Positions 1,136 through 58,037 of a stretch of DNA of 58,647 nucleotides are shown here, one piece after another (positions within the stretch are counted from its first letter, which is position 1; each line of letters opens with the position of its first letter). Made by a program: the position numbers and the translations under genes. Source of the stretch: Octopus sinensis (Eukaryota); the NCBI RefSeq assembly GCF_006345805.1, contig NW_021834186.1, positions 1 through 58,647 on the forward strand, given 5' to 3'. The notes under the pieces are model-generated. The model was not told where the DNA came from and ran no database searches. It was given only the letters and a program-made list of their open reading frames with translations.

Positions 1136-2410
1136 TATTTGTGTGTATACACACACATATCTACATGTGTGAATTGTGTTTGTGTGTTTGTATGTATTGA
1201 CGGTCACACACACATAAAACCAAGCTCTAATGAAAAACAGAGAAGCGCGTTCAACAAGCTTGTCCCGCATGCGGTGCATGCATGATGCACGTTTCAGCGA
1301 ATGCTTTGAAAGCGACATCAGTTATGCATTCCTACATGTTGCATTCCATCTGTCATGGCAACAGGAGTTGTGGGATAGAAGAGAAAGAGTGGGTGGAGGT
1401 GCTGCATGGCATTCATTTCTATATATGAATGGTTTTGCATGTTCATTAGTATGTATGTATGTATGTGTGTATGTATGTATGTATGTATGTATATATATAT
1501 ATATATATATCTATCTGTATATATATATGTGTGCGTGTGTGTGTTTGTATGTATATATGTATATAGCTCCTTCTGTATATATATATATATATATAATATG
1601 AGAGAGAGAGAGAGAGAGAGAGAGGAGAGAGAAAGAGAGAGATCCTTATAAACACACCCATGGAAGATTGATTTTCTAAACATTTACATACATACATGCA
1701 TGCATACAAACATACATACATACATATAGATGCATACATATATTTGAAACCGCTACACAAACGCACACATCCACACACACACACACACATATATATATAT
1801 GTATGCATATATATATATATATATATATACATATACATTGTACACATGCATTTATATATATGTATTTATATATATATACACATACACACACACCACATAT
1901 CTATATCTATATCTATATATATATATATATTATATATATTTATAATATATATATAATATATATATATACGCAGACATTCGCACAATACACATGCACACGT
2001 CCAGCTACACACACGCCCACTCACATGGTAAAATAGATCCATTATCAGCCATAATAATGAAAAGACATTTGTTCGATCAACCGAAGATCTTAGTCATAGA
2101 ACCAGCTTGTGTGTGTGTGTATGTGTGCGGGCGCGCGCGCATAGACGCAGACATGAGCCAGTGGTTAATAATTCTCTTCCAAATCATGTGTTGTCGAGTT
2201 CGATCGTTGGTGTAGAGTTTCATTGGTACAAGTGTCTTTTAGCTGATTACGAGTAACCTTGCATCGACCCGTATGTTGAGTGAAATGAAATAGAATACAA
2301 ATTGCGTGGAATCCCATCGCACGTTTTGGGCAGGATCTGCCAAAAATTGTACCAGCTTTGTAATACATTTAGCTACTCTGGTTCTGCCTTTGAATTAACA
2401 TATCTGCGGA

Positions 2411-2536
2411 ATTAAACCATTTAAACTATAACTCAGCAGCCCTCTCCAAGAATACAGTAATAGCGAATGGAGTGCCTCAGAGAGCTGTCTTGGGGTCACT
2501 ACTGTTTGTGGAAACTCTTTTGGACATGCCATCAGT
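2411..2536 (+). mobile_element. Duplicated 126-bp piece of the CR1-like RT fragment (GVPQ region)
   Basis: Near-identical to 3003-3128 (attaaaccatttaaac...gacatgccatcagt). Confidence 0.9.
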
Positions 2537-3002
2537 ATACATGTGTATATAATATATATATATATATATATATATATATATATATATGTGTGTTGTGTGT
2601 GTGTGTGTGTGTGTTGGGTATGTATATATGTATATAGCTCCCTCTGTATATATATATATATATATATATATATATATAGTAATTAAGGGTTTAGCAACGA
2701 TTTGCCTCACCACACACCGAATTTAGAAATAGCAGTCAAAAAGTTTTGGCTATACTTTTTATTTAAAAGGGAGATCCCAGTAAAACCAAAGCACTTAAAA
2801 AGCAAACGACGCAGGCAAAAGAGAAAGAAATGACGAAAATCATTCTATATTAAGTCACCTACGGACGTACGTTTCGGAATTAAGTCATTGCAGAGCATAA
2901 AAATTAAATAATTATGTCTTACCTTACTATATATATATATATATATAGATAGAGAGAGAGAGAGCGAGAGAGAGAGAGAGAGAGAGAGAGAGAGAGAGAG
3001 AG

Positions 3003-4005
3003 ATTAAACCATTTAAACTATAACTCAGCAGCCCTCTCCAAGAAGACAGCAATAGCGAATGGAGTGCCTCAGGGAACTGTCTTGAGGTCGCTACTGTTTG
3101 TGGAAACTCTTTCGGACATGCCATCAGTTTCACAGACAGTCACACTTACTGGCTATGCCGACGAAACAAAGGTAGTACAAGCAGTCAAGGAAACTTTCGA
3201 TGTTCATCTTTTACCGTGGACCTAGTTGCCATCTATAAATGGGCTGAAGAAAGCAACATAAAATTTAATGCAGGAAAATTCCAAACCTTCCGTTTCAACT
3301 ATCGTCTGCTAACCTAACATGTCACAACGGAGATAGTTTGGACCAAAATGAGCGGCACTACCAGCATCAAATACAGTACGTTGTCTTTGGGACTGATATG
3401 AGCAACAATGCCTTGTTTCACGTGTATATCACCAAAATGGTGGCAATATGCAGGTAAATGGCCAGATATATTCTGAGAACTTTCTGAGCAAGAGACCAGG
3501 AAACTATGCTGGTTCTTTTGAGGAGATTTGTCCTCGGCTGCCTAGACTATTGCTCTCAACTATGGTCACCTCATAGTGTCAAATTAATAACGAAACTTGA
3601 AGCAGTTCAGCGGTGCTACATTTGGTAAATTGCATCAATAGAACAGCTGAGCTATTGGGAGAGACTGAAAGAGTTACGACTTTACTCTCTGGAGCAAAAA
3701 CGAGAGAGATATGCAGTGATATACGTATGGAAGATCTTGAAGGTGCTGGCACCAAATTTTGATATCGAGAGCCTCTGAACTGGACGTCACTAAACTGTTC
3801 CGAGGGTTTCATCCATCGCGACAAGAGAGAGGACCCTGTATTGCAATAACTTGGGATTCAAGGCCCCATTGCTATTTAATCCCTTACCAAAACATCTGCG
3901 GGATGTACATGGAGTAGGGGTAGATGTTTCCAAGAGACCAATTGACCTCCTGTTGTCTATAGTCCCACATGAATCTGCACCACAGCAAGAAACTCAAAAC
4001 AGAGT
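3003..4005 (+). mobile_element. Decayed CR1/L2-group LINE ORF2 fragment (RT and C-terminus)
   Basis: Manual translation: NGVPQGTVLRSLLF (GVPQG at 3061), YADE at 3154 in the same frame, IYKWAEESNIKFNAGKFQ, LDYCSQLWSP (3542), LSYWERLKELRLYSLEQKRERYAVIYVWKIL, APLLFNPLPKHLRD; stops and frameshifts present. Confidence 0.9.
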
Positions 4006-54802: not shown

Positions 54803-55900
54803 TCACTGGCTCGGTGGGGAATACTGATGGTAACGGTGGTGCTGGTGATGATGATGGTGGTGGAGGGAGCGAAAGATGGTGGACATAACGACGTGGGCGT
54901 TGATAGTGATGGTGCTGGTAGTGGTGGTGGTGTTAGTGATGCCGTTACAACTAGTTACTACTACTACTACTACTAGAACTAGTAGTAGTAGTAGTAGAAG
55001 AAGAAGAAGAAAAAGAAATAGTAGTAGTAGTGGCAGCAGCATTAGACGTAATTTTTGTAGTAGTAGTAGTAGTATTTATTGCTGTAGTAGTAGTAGTAGT
55101 AGTAGTAGTAGTAGTAGTAGTAGTAGTAATATTTGTAGTAGTAGAAGTAGTAGTAGTAATATTTGTAGTAGCAGAAGTAGTAGCAGCAGTAGTAGTAGTA
55201 GTAGTATTAGCAGCAGCAGTAGCAGCAGCAACAGTAGTAGTAGTAGTAGTAGTAGTAGCAGCAGTAGCAGCAGCAACAGCGGTAGTAGTAGTAGTTGTAG
55301 TAGTAGTAGTAGTAGTAGTAGTAGTAGTAGTAGTAAAGTGATATGGATGTGGTGGTGGTGGTGCTAGTGGTGTTAGTGGTACTGGTTGTAAAAGTCTCGG
55401 AAGCAGGGTAATAGTGGTGATGGTAGCAGTGATGGGGTGGGGAATGCTGTGGAATTCCCTATTCTCACATATAATTGCACATATAATCACCATCATCACT
55501 CAATCCACCTGTCCCCCTACCCACCCCCGCCACCTGCGTTTCCACCATCATCTCCCTCAGTTCTCTCCCATTTCTCCTTCTCCCTCTCTTTCTCCTTCTC
55601 CCGCTCCTTACTCTCCTTACAATAAGGCTCCTGTCTTATGAACTGTTGTCAAGAACTCTTCCTTCCGCTTCTCTTTCAATGTTGGTGACGAGGAGGAGGA
55701 GGAGGAGGCGATTGAAACGGAAATTATAGAGAAAGAGCAGAACGAGTCACTAGAAATATTGACTAGACGTGTGGGCGTTTTGATGAGAATGGTGGTGGCT
55801 GTGGTGGTGGTGGTGGTGGTGGTGGTGGTGGTGGTGGTGGTGGTGGTATTGGCGACGATGGTGGTACAGATGATGGTTAAATTAATGGCGAAGAATGATG
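54803..55900. repeat. (AGT/AGC)n and (GGT)n simple and cryptic repeats
   Basis: Directly visible; poly-S/T/V ORFs. Confidence 0.92.
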
Positions 55901-56429
55901 ATTTAGGGGGTGGGGGTAATATAATATTTGTTAAGCAGAACATCAAGGGCGGAGAGAGTGGGAGTTTCTTAATTGTACTGTACTTTATTTTTCCCCCTCC
56001 TTTTGGTATCGTTGAAAACAATGTTTATGTAATAAACATCTCTGTTTACGTTTGAAAGGTTATTTATGAACCAGAAGCTACTCTAATTAAAGGACTCAAG
56101 ACCAGAGTTAGAAGCTGAAAATAATTTTGTGAATTATGTTAATTTAAAAAAGATTCGTTACAGGTGGCCATCTGTTTCGTTCTGTACGAGCTTTTTACAC
56201 GCTTGAAAGCTTTTGGTATCAGTAATACTGCTAGAGGCAGTGTATATGTATGTATGTATGTTATGTATGTATGTATGTATGTATGTATGTATGTATGTAT
56301 GTATGTATGTATGTATGTATGTATGTATGTGCATATAGAGAGACAGGGAGAAAGAGATAGATAGATAGATAGATAGATAGATAGATAGATAGATAGATAG
56401 ATATAGATAGATAGATAGATAGATAGATA

Positions 56430-56700
56430 ATTTATTTATGGGCCACACAGGGCTATACACAGAGGGGACAATTACAATGTAGGGTTTTTCTTTTCGAGGT
56501 GAGGGGGGGCAAAAAAAATAAGGACAACGATCAAAATGGATCGAAATCGTTGGGAGTATATGCAAAAAATGTCGAAATAGTACAAAAAGTTCCCAAGAAA
56601 TGGGAAGGTTTATCTATGGAAAGAAAAATCTACGAAAAGACCACAGTAACCTCGGGCAATTAGTCACATATTAACATTTATTTACAAATAAGTAACTCTC
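56430..56700 (-). mobile_element. Putative LINE 3' end
   Basis: Minus strand ends ttgtcccctctgtgtatagccctgtgtggcccataaataaat next to a (CTAT)n tract; homologous to the SINE B tail. No coding motif seen. Confidence 0.45.
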
Positions 56701-58037
56701 TGTATTAAATTTTTTTACGGTTCATAGGATCATGCTCAAGGTGGCTTCGCCATTCATTCGTGCCATCCTTGCTATAGATAGATAGTAGATAGATAGATAG
56801 ATAGATAGATAGATAGATAGATAGATAGATAGATAGATAGATAGATAGATAGATAGATATAGGGAGGCAGATAGGTAGACAGACAAACAAAAAGGTTGGT
56901 GACCAGAATGGATGGAGTTTTGACGAAATGAAAAACAGGACACTTAGCTGATTTAGATTGCTAAATAGTCATTTTCTTTTTACTGAAACACGTGGAGAAT
57001 GAAGCAGTTAAGTAATTTATCAACTCAACTGTCCCGGTCTACTTCCGTATGTATGTCACGCAATTTAAATCCTACTCTGTGCCCTCGGGCATATGGCGAT
57101 ATGGCGTAGTGGTTAAGAGCGCGGGCTACTTACCCCAAGATTCCGATATATATATATAGGCAGGGGTGGGTGGAATTCACAAAAAAAAAAAGAGGAAGAC
57201 AGGTGGTGTAGACAACAACCAGATGTATTAGTTTAACGCTCGGGAAGTGAAAAGTCTTTAACGTTTCGAGCTTACGCTCGTCCACAGGAAAGCAACACAG
57301 AAAGAAACAAGGAGAGAAAATAAAGTATGTGTAGTGGCTGGACGGTCATTTTTTTTCCTTGCCAAATGAACATACGTACTGTTTGGCAAAAAAAAAAAAG
57401 AAAAATAATAACTGTCCGAAATATAACAATATCTGTTTCAATACAGGATATCACATCAGAAATCTTGCAAAACAATACATAAACGCATACCACCCACCCA
57501 CACACACACACACACACACACACAACACACACACCCACACACACAACACCACACACATAATATATATAATATATAATATATATATATATATATAAACACA
57601 TGCACACACACAGACACATATATACATACATGCAGAGACAGACAGATAGTCAGTGAGAGAGAGAGAGAGTCAGTGAGAGACAGACAATCAGTAAAAGACA
57701 GAGAGAGGCATATACATTCATACATGCATAAATAAATACAGCACCCACCACCACTAAAGCATCTTTACATTAATTCCGATCAACAATCCACTACCACCAC
57801 CAACACCGCCATAATCCCACCCCACCCCCCACTGAATAATCTTCCTCATTCCTCTACCAAGCATCCTTGAATATCATCCATTCACATTTTACACTGCAGC
57901 GACACCAGTGAGACATTCCAATACTTGTTGCTTGCATCAACAAGTATTTATCTAATCCTCCTGCACATCATTTTTGCCGTTAGATGAAATGAAACATATA
58001 AAAATTGCTTTTTATCTTCTTTTTTATCGTTTATATT

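Follow-up and report, generated by a model that had tools for sequence, protein, structure and literature searches.

A two-part 22-base motif under constraint at the core of an unclassified non-coding repeat amplified locally in Octopus sinensis

The 58,647-nt stretch of the Octopus sinensis genome analysed here (positions 1 to 58,647 of contig NW_021834186.1, assembly GCF_006345805.1; hereafter the window) contains 13 copies, distributed over both strands, of a 22-base motif in which an 11-base block, AGCGACAYCAG, and a 7-base block, RCATTCC, enclose four free bases. Our results place the motif at the constrained core of a non-coding repeat that is unclassified and has been amplified locally: the copies fall into a repeat family, this family has been duplicated locally, and both blocks are conserved in excess of the spacer and the flanks. 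Tentatively, we read the motif as a putative site for a multi-module DNA-binding protein that is carried by the repeat. Repeat-borne recognition motifs are of a kind already known, and a protein reader is favoured over a guide RNA. Cephalopod genomes consist mostly of repeats, part of which are unclassified, and gene regulation in these animals is poorly understood; a repeat family with a 22-base two-part site under purifying selection offers a concrete handle on cephalopod repeats. The motif may serve one of the many lineage-specific DNA-binding proteins or a small RNA and, if so, would show a repeat recruited to a host function; if it decays ordinarily genome-wide, it would represent only the best-preserved piece of an unclassified repeat.

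A scan of the window with the pattern AGCGACAYCAGNNNNRCATTCC yields 13 exact matches, compared with none in 100 dinucleotide-preserving shuffles (Table 1). This is consistent with the earlier note on this stretch, made from the sequence alone, which had listed 13 copies at the same positions and on the same strands, with both half-sites matching the consensus throughout and the spacer taking six forms of unchanging length. Indeed, over the whole window, permitting 1-3 mismatches adds no site to the 13 exact ones (0.05 expected), and varying the gap from 0 to 14 bases leaves four bases as the sole spacing. Within the half-sites only two positions vary, the Y of the first half and the R of the second, both by transition, and the motif is followed by A in all copies except that at 1311 (12 of 13). 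CATTCC, the TEAD/M-CAT core (GGAATG), is found in 13 of 13 copies, a 6-mer which alone does not establish TEAD membership; no other feature connects the motif with TEAD.

The 13 copies represent about seven independent lineages of the motif-bearing repeat, which we compared using the copies at 33516 (standing for the main family of Table 1), 41499, 45322, 54365, 57898, 9607 and 1311. Among these lineages, the first half-site has a mean pairwise identity of 0.95 and the second one of 0.93, compared with 0.48 for the spacer; the value is 0.46-0.52 across the 12-13 bases next to the motif and 0.18-0.41 at greater distance. In motif-anchored columns, only 2 of 18 half-site positions are variable, as against all 28 of those beside them, namely 4/4 in the spacer and 24/24 adjoining (Fisher P = 1.5e-10). 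Furthermore, among the seven recent duplicates, which have accumulated 58 substitution steps across 348 ungapped columns, the zone from about -29 to +36 contains a single step versus 13 expected and is the coldest 65-column window of the alignment (P = 0.0027 by column permutation); both CpGs within it are intact. The 22-mer taken alone displays 1 step versus 3.9 expected in these duplicates, which is not significant (P = 0.10). Given the 2 variable positions of 18 in the half-sites versus 28 of 28 beside them, and the cold spot in the duplicates, our data support purifying selection on the two blocks as a two-part recognition site and not on the four bases between them. The sample is biased in that very diverged family copies are recognisable only if they have retained the motif. 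A neutral model, however, predicts far more sites with 1-3 mismatches than with none, contrary to the 0 versus 13 observed, and because no copy with 1-3 mismatches exists this bias is limited, albeit not removed. Thus, the rates of half-sites, spacer and flanks, compared within the window, are not equal, and the suggestion of the earlier note that conserved halves around a free spacer of fixed length reflect constraint holds.

All 13 copies belong to one diverged, strand-asymmetric, non-coding repeat family, because remote homology is detected on both sides of the motif by nhmmer and in alignments. A profile made from the alignment of positions -130 to +80 around each site (a wider alignment was also made) gives 13 matches in the window, with E values from 1e-21 to 1e-68, and nothing else significant. 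The recognisable unit is ~200 bp long, reaching up to ~700 bp in the youngest copies, and the motif is internal to it rather than terminal, as indicated by the homology on both sides. The upstream side is rich in C (~40%) and poor in G (~7%) in 12 of the 13 copies, a composition that is not common in its surroundings, as G of 8% or less is found in only 12% of 120-nt windows. The family also has in common a CAAGCATC box 22-40 nt upstream of the motif and TCTACAYTGC immediately preceding it; the motif is followed by a TGTTG/CAACA inverted repeat and, at about +60 to +100, by a C-rich box with a T-run. Eight copies (19412, 22668, 28788, 31231, 33516, 37057, 41499 and 42273) are recent local duplicates, some of them inverted; seven of these are 88-97% identical over ~700 bp where alignable, and the eighth, 41499, is older, with 79-81% identity over ~190 bp. 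The earlier note had proposed both the local duplication of about eight copies and the spread of the motif by an old repeat, and the two proposals agree with these alignments, which unite all copies in one diverged family with homology beyond the motif. It had also described five copies as having very different flanks: these are indeed strongly diverged, but they are not unrelated, since remote homology is found on both sides of the motif. The sequence common to these five comprises the motif, ~13 bases before it and ~35 after it. Those at 45322, 54365 and 57898 are mutually alike only over about -5 to +50 (89-92% identity; one pair to -41), that at 1311 retains the motif and the hairpin, and that at 9607 little beyond the motif. 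The latter lies, as previously noted, in otherwise unique DNA, its flanks having no other match within the window outside the motif.

Some of the local duplications are segmental and inverted (28263-29067 versus 30976-31784, and 30782-31864 versus 32940-33995), with arms of 0.8-1.1 kb that are 86-95% complementary and lie 1-2 kb apart. Through them, the motif copies at 28788 (+), 31231 (-) and 33516 (+) stand in a palindromic arrangement and, if transcribed, the duplications could form long double-stranded RNA. A partial family member at 41860-42000 starts where the sequence after the hairpin starts in the full copies, and in the full copies the module missing from it is flanked by GCATC-type short direct repeats. 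The possibility that this is an 'empty' copy into which a motif module was inserted was considered and rejected: the alignment is that of a copy of the downstream part only, and therefore neither an insertion nor a deletion is concluded. A degenerate motif-like element occurs in the main-family units (Table 1; also at 22340, 26618 and 28463); it is the only decayed relative of the motif seen in the window and is probably a decayed internal duplicate.

Table 1. Motif copies and associated features in the window (signed positions are relative to the motif)
Feature	Position	Strand	Remarks
Motif copy	1311-1332	+	Spacer TTAT; second half GCATTCC; followed by T; only copy without G-poor upstream side
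Inverted repeat after 1311 copy		+	TGTTGC/GCAACA retained, larger loop
Motif copy	9607-9628	+	Spacer TTGG; second half GCATTCC; hairpin lost
Degenerate motif-like element	19084-19119	+	CGACATCAG-N10-ACATTCTC; precedes the perfect copy by ~330 nt in units of the main family
Unchanging zone with degenerate inverted repeat (example)	19383-19475	+	Equivalent zone in each main-family copy
Motif copy, main family	19412-19433	+	Spacer TGAG; CAAGCATC box at 19383-19390; AATAAA at +191
Motif copy, main family	22668-22689	+	Spacer TGAG
Motif copy, main family	28788-28809	+	Spacer TGAG; left arm of inverted duplication, partner carries 31231
Motif copy, main family	31231-31252	-	Spacer TGAG; inverted duplications with units of 28788 and 33516
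Motif copy, main family	33516-33537	+	Spacer TGAG; subtype retaining GTTTTGG tract at ~+83
Motif copy, main family	37057-37078	+	Spacer TGAG; homology to other copies starts only at ~-170
Motif copy, older relative of main family	41499-41520	-	Spacer TGAG; homology -149 to +42; 3' arm of inverted repeat deleted; ATTTTTTGG at ~+70
Partial family member	41860-42000	-	Downstream-of-hairpin part only, no motif; adjoins full copy 42273
Motif copy, main family	42273-42294	-	Spacer TGAT, the only motif change among local duplicates
Perfect 10-bp inverted repeat, 6-nt loop	45295-45320	-	ATACTTGTTG / CAACAAGTAT; directly after motif
Divergent motif copy	45322-45343	-	Spacer AGTG; C at Y position of first half
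Divergent motif copy	54365-54386	-	Spacer ATAC; imperfect inverted repeat (9/11)
Divergent motif copy	57898-57919	+	Spacer TGAG; C at Y position of first half
Perfect 11-bp inverted repeat, 7-nt loop	57920-57948	+	AATACTTGTTG / CAACAAGTATT; directly after motif

We infer that the reader of the motif is most likely a protein acting on DNA, and the effect of its binding is conceived in the same conditional manner. Selection would maintain the 22-mer as the core of a strand-asymmetric, non-coding and unclassified repeat unit, duplicated repeatedly within the region in both orientations. Its 11-base and 7-base blocks would each be read base by base, the four bases between them setting only the distance, by a multi-zinc-finger array or a paired helix-turn-helix domain such as those of transposase-derived proteins, and the protein, once bound, would tag each unit for a function in chromatin or regulation. 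The length of 22 bp is compatible with the target of a C2H2 zinc-finger array (~3 bp per finger). Repeats with conserved protein-binding motifs and free spacers of fixed length are common, as exemplified by the CENP-B box, REST RE1, CTCF and Su(Hw), and we give a protein reader the highest weight because, in known cases, motifs conserved within repeats are most commonly explained in this way. Several points nonetheless weigh against it. No candidate binding protein was found, and 11 fixed positions are stricter than most protein-DNA motifs and suit base pairing at least equally well. Moreover, the context is strand-specific (C ~40% and G ~7% upstream, and A after the motif, each in 12 of 13 copies), which a purely DNA-level site does not require, and the data derive from one 58-kb window in which diverged copies are recognisable only with the motif kept.

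A DNA-binding protein would place the motif beside several known systems. Like the 17-bp CENP-B box, which is bound by a transposase-derived protein with two helix-turn-helix domains, it combines invariant blocks with free positions of fixed number and stays intact, in either orientation, inside otherwise diverging repeats; by contrast, the units described here do not form a tandem satellite, the sequence is unrelated and the blocks are longer (11 + 7). The two-part 21-bp RE1 of REST, CTCF sites in SINE (short interspersed nuclear element) B2 and Su(Hw) sites in gypsy are likewise two-half sites of ~20 bp spread by repeats, and some transposon-borne zinc-finger sites have later been kept by selection, as appears to be the case here. 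However, the motif fits neither RE1 nor the CTCF core; REST is a vertebrate factor, and the majority of transposon-borne copies in these systems decay, whereas none has decayed here. The conserved sequence element (CSE) of clustered protocadherin promoters is also ~22 bp long, occurs once per duplicated unit and is conserved amid diverging surroundings, but the window has no coding exons, the orientation of the motif is mixed and the sequence is unrelated.

The conservation could also be accounted for without a host DNA-binding protein, and one such explanation, which we consider unlikely, is that the motif is the propagation sequence of a mobile element (for instance, its internal promoter or the sequence bound by its reverse transcriptase or transposase), similar to the central domains of SINEs. 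The motif would then look invariant as the master elements are under selection and the copies are young relative to the masters. Indeed, the copies at 45322, 54365 and 57898 share a sharp block from -5 to +50 at 89-92% with little similarity beyond, which is the pattern of a SINE core and is also displayed by the SINE superfamily domains (CORE, V, Deu, Ceph, Meta, Nin-DC), where a sharp block of 50-80 bp stands in an unalignable remainder and where function is obscure even in the described cases. The window is furthermore packed with SINEs, fragments of long interspersed nuclear elements (LINEs) and microsatellites; AATAAA lies ~170-220 nt downstream in several copies, and (TAA)n tracts follow further downstream of some main-family copies. 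On the other hand, A/B boxes and a tRNA are missing, and no terminal inverted partner, tail or target-site duplication is found at the edges of the block or the unit; the lack of a tRNA-like head, A/B boxes, tail and target-site duplication equally distinguishes the family from the SINE domains, with which the comparison is by description only. The block is not significantly similar to the abundant SINE of the window, and no copy has even one half-site mismatch. Moreover, the cold spot among the segmental duplicates implies constraint after copying, unlike in dead transposon copies, and constraint that continues after local duplication is a further difference from the SINE domains. The most sceptical explanation, namely, that the motif has no function and owes its appearance to recent common descent, gene conversion, a mutational cold spot or an artefact of the exact-match search, is very improbable. 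It can draw on the fact that 8 of the 13 copies are recent duplicates and therefore carry little independent weight, on the non-significant deficit in the motif alone among duplicates (1 versus 3.9, P = 0.10) and on the finding of very diverged copies only where the motif survives. Yet in the seven lineages 16 of 18 half-site positions are identical although the 12 bases on each side are all variable, the presence of 13 exact copies and none with 1-3 mismatches is contrary to neutral expectation, and the divergent copies are without the flanking homology on which gene conversion depends.

The remaining explanations assume that the units are transcribed. If this happens on the motif strand, the 22-mer with the following A might pair with a guide RNA of ~23 nt, the 7-nt block and the A forming the seed match, the four free bases facing guide positions 9-12 and the 11-nt block providing 3' pairing; alternatively, the opposite strand itself might supply the small RNA. 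We hold this to be improbable, and more doubtful still is its specific form, in which the 22-mer and A are a pairing site for an undescribed ~23-nt guide whose seed, GGAAUGU, is that of miR-1, and the units act as transcribed decoys, triggers of miRNA degradation or part of a new small-RNA system. The 11/4/7 layout, with A next in 12 of 13 copies (the layout alone was tested), is that of bulged miRNA sites, including those of target-directed miRNA degradation (TDMD; Cyrano/miR-7, NREP/miR-29b and the viral HSUR1/miR-27), and of the CDR1as sponge (7 nt + A / 4 / 11, 23 nt in total), and ACAUUCCA corresponds to the 8-mer match for the seed of miR-1. The conserved bases form contiguous, all-or-none runs, reduced essentially to a unit of 22-23 nt in the two copies that have diverged most; the upstream context, being G-poor, is poorly structured. 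In folding predictions the 7-nt block is mostly unpaired (0.66-0.97 for 8 of the 9 copies folded), whereas the first block is partly paired. The sole two variants are transitions, tolerable as G-U pairs by a fixed partner, but this argument is weak because some partner accommodates any transition. The 3' part of miR-1 is presumably not complementary to the 11-nt block, and no guide is known whose 3' part would match. Neither strand folds into a precursor hairpin around the 22-mer, the copies lie several kilobases apart on both strands, unlike in known sponge RNAs and in the TDMD and CDR1as cases, where the sites are within one transcript, and no string matching the motif occurs in the text supplements of an octopus miRNA paper (PMC9699675). 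Rather than a pairing site, the conserved block might be a short non-coding exon of a multi-copy unit resembling a long non-coding RNA, either an internal exon of ~44-82 nt, from AG to CAACAR|GYAT, or the start of a terminal exon with a poly(A) signal ~190 nt downstream; in a variant, the unit would be a gene for a spliced-leader or small-nuclear-type RNA (snRNA), whose splice donor would fall within the hairpin, followed further on by a U-rich Sm-like site. The spliced exon and spliced-leader RNA readings are weakly supported, and we rate an exon as quite unlikely. All 13 motif copies have AG at positions 1-2; the upstream side has ~7% G and, in most copies, no more than 1-2 additional AG dinucleotides per 110 nt, and another AG, at -27, is preceded at a distance of ~24-27 nt by a box resembling a branch point (CTAAT/CTAAC). 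In three of the seven lineages (45322, 54365 and 57898) the aligned block ends at GT, located in the 3' arm; every main-family copy, however, has GC at the donor position and 1311 has GA, while 9607 and 41499 lack the position, so that GT is missing in 10 copies, and the GT sites are weak when hand-scored against a human splice-site weight matrix. Downstream, AT4-6G tracts are present at +68 to +97 in 41499, 54365 and 57898 and GTTTTGG in 33516 and 42273 (background 0.69 per kb per strand), and AATAAA at +171 to +222 in three lineages (versus 0.93 per kb), but these enrichment figures are post hoc. Block lengths differ between copies, an exon leaves the free 4-nt spacer between invariant blocks unexplained, the literature yielded no report of spliced-leader trans-splicing in cephalopods, and no Rfam snRNA or spliced-leader family matches even at E <= 10. 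The AT4-6G and GTTTTGG tracts are each preceded by a C-rich box and lie at a similar distance downstream of the motif; they could represent a Pol III terminator, an Sm-like site or chance.

A number of known sequence classes were tried and rejected. A protein-coding exon is excluded because the single frame open in all copies (S-D-I/T-S/R-x-T/A-F) has only non-synonymous variation, with none of five available third positions varying, because the lengths of the indels that follow the motif are not divisible by 3, and because a profile search with the corresponding peptide gave no match among 5.8 billion protein clusters. ARAGORN found no tRNA in the window, and an origin as a tRNA-derived SINE was dismissed, as there is no tRNA-like head and no B box within 250 nt; only loose A-box-like strings are found near the motif, on the G-rich strand. 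The divergent copies have no common tail after the block, no direct repeats flank the 42066-42758 unit, and the similarity to the abundant SINE of the window (common CGACNCCAGTG) is not significant. The earlier note had also suggested the cis-acting end of an element, which receives no support, as homology extends beyond the motif in both directions without an inverted partner or a target-site duplication; the same observations exclude the terminal inverted repeat of a DNA transposon or a miniature inverted-repeat transposable element, and the opposite-strand motif copies that lie 2-4 kb apart do so inside long inverted segmental duplications. A Helitron end was rejected as there is no CTRR terminus. 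The opposite strand starts with TGG, as would a primer-binding site of a long terminal repeat (LTR) element, but its remainder is unlike a tRNA 3' end; from what is generally known of tRNAs, the implied primer would lack T54-T55 of the T-loop and have the four free bases in stem positions, and a hairpin of ~40 nt separates the motif from the only candidate LTR-like part. Among known consensus sequences, a CTCF site (CCASYAGRKGGCRS core) does not fit, since the free spacer (TTAT, ATAC and others) takes up the positions at which its central G run requires GG, and REST, the proximal sequence element of snRNA genes, Pax and ZNF143/Staf are broken by the free spacer or the Y/R variants. Scans for the motif returned 4 matches in viral contigs, taken as chance, and 2 in metagenomes, one of which was examined and is GC-rich, bacterial-like DNA. 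Literature and supplement text searches for the motif and the SINE sequence revealed nothing relevant.

With regard to structure, the earlier note had described a hairpin following the motif. The stems at 57920-57948 and 45295-45320 are present and the inverted repeat is degenerate elsewhere, as stated, but a functional hairpin is not borne out by covariation: a comparable stem is found neither at 54365, where it is imperfect, nor in the main family, where it has shrunk to a TGTT/AACA core, and only one pair has compensatory changes on both sides among the copies. In the 11-bp stem, 67.4% of cells are paired versus a shuffle mean of 66.8%, and the TGTT/AACA core alone is constant. The hairpin is incidental or lineage-specific. 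Nor did the alternative suggestion of a structured RNA hold up, given that RNAalifold predicted no consensus pairs on the motif copies, that pairing is at shuffle level with a single covarying pair and that no Rfam family was found. Indeed, an Rfam scan of the window at the gathering score gave no match, and at E <= 5-10 it gave microsatellite artefacts or unrelated low scores, none covering the 22-mer on the motif strand; a match to RF01382 at 41454-41479 (E 8.2) lies beside the motif on the opposite strand. A miRNA precursor was rejected since the folds of both strands share no long stem with the 22-mer (z-scores from 0.37 to -2.76, with differing structures) and no inverted copy of the motif is present even at 3 mismatches, and so was a hammerhead ribozyme, whose core is CUGAUGA + GAAA, because the opposite strand reads CUGAUGU or CUGGUGU.

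The motif copies are set in a window rich in microsatellites, SINE copies and LINE fragments, with no coding exons or nearby gene; its longest open reading frames (ORFs) are translations of low-complexity DNA. ORFs derived from transposons and SINEs have no relative in the protein collection searched. The translation of one ORF, 8390-8803 (+), resembles the C-terminal portion of a mariner-type transposase and has no Pfam match at E <= 0.01. Remnants of non-LTR retrotransposons are located at 2953-3314 (+) and 23273-23803 (+); one has a weak RVT_1 match (E = 0.002, below the curated cutoff) and the other, inserted downstream of the 22668 unit, contains an ORF resembling a C-terminal CxxC...HxxxC tail. 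The abundant SINE-like repeat is found at 16899-17357, 26790-26960, 27720-27890 and 41690-41880, one copy being in a 224-bp x2 tandem, and has a B-box-like GGAATTTGAACTC on the reverse strand; it may resemble octopus SINEs. A second SINE-like family, present at 44800-45171 as a 182-bp x2 tandem and also at 10570-10660, 14640-14720, 39420-39490, 40550-40630 and elsewhere, gives rise to recurrent pseudo-ORFs such as SFRLPNPLTRHWSARGYSRRHLPK. Permissive Rfam searches return hundreds of mir-297, mir-3149 and mir-466-type matches, which are artefacts of TG/TA/CA microsatellites (for example, at 126-1138, 5410-7303 and 43724-43845). Upstream of main-family motif copies, on the motif strand, lie A/C-rich, G-depleted low-complexity tracts (18400-19300, 21460-22500 and 25600-28500), which are long, reach a GC skew of -0.5, repeat the unit GCCACCACCGCCACCCTCAACACA with a period of 24 nt and contain no long ORF. 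These tracts also include a tandem duplication of ~920 bp, relating 25722-27590 to 26645-28509 at 96% identity.

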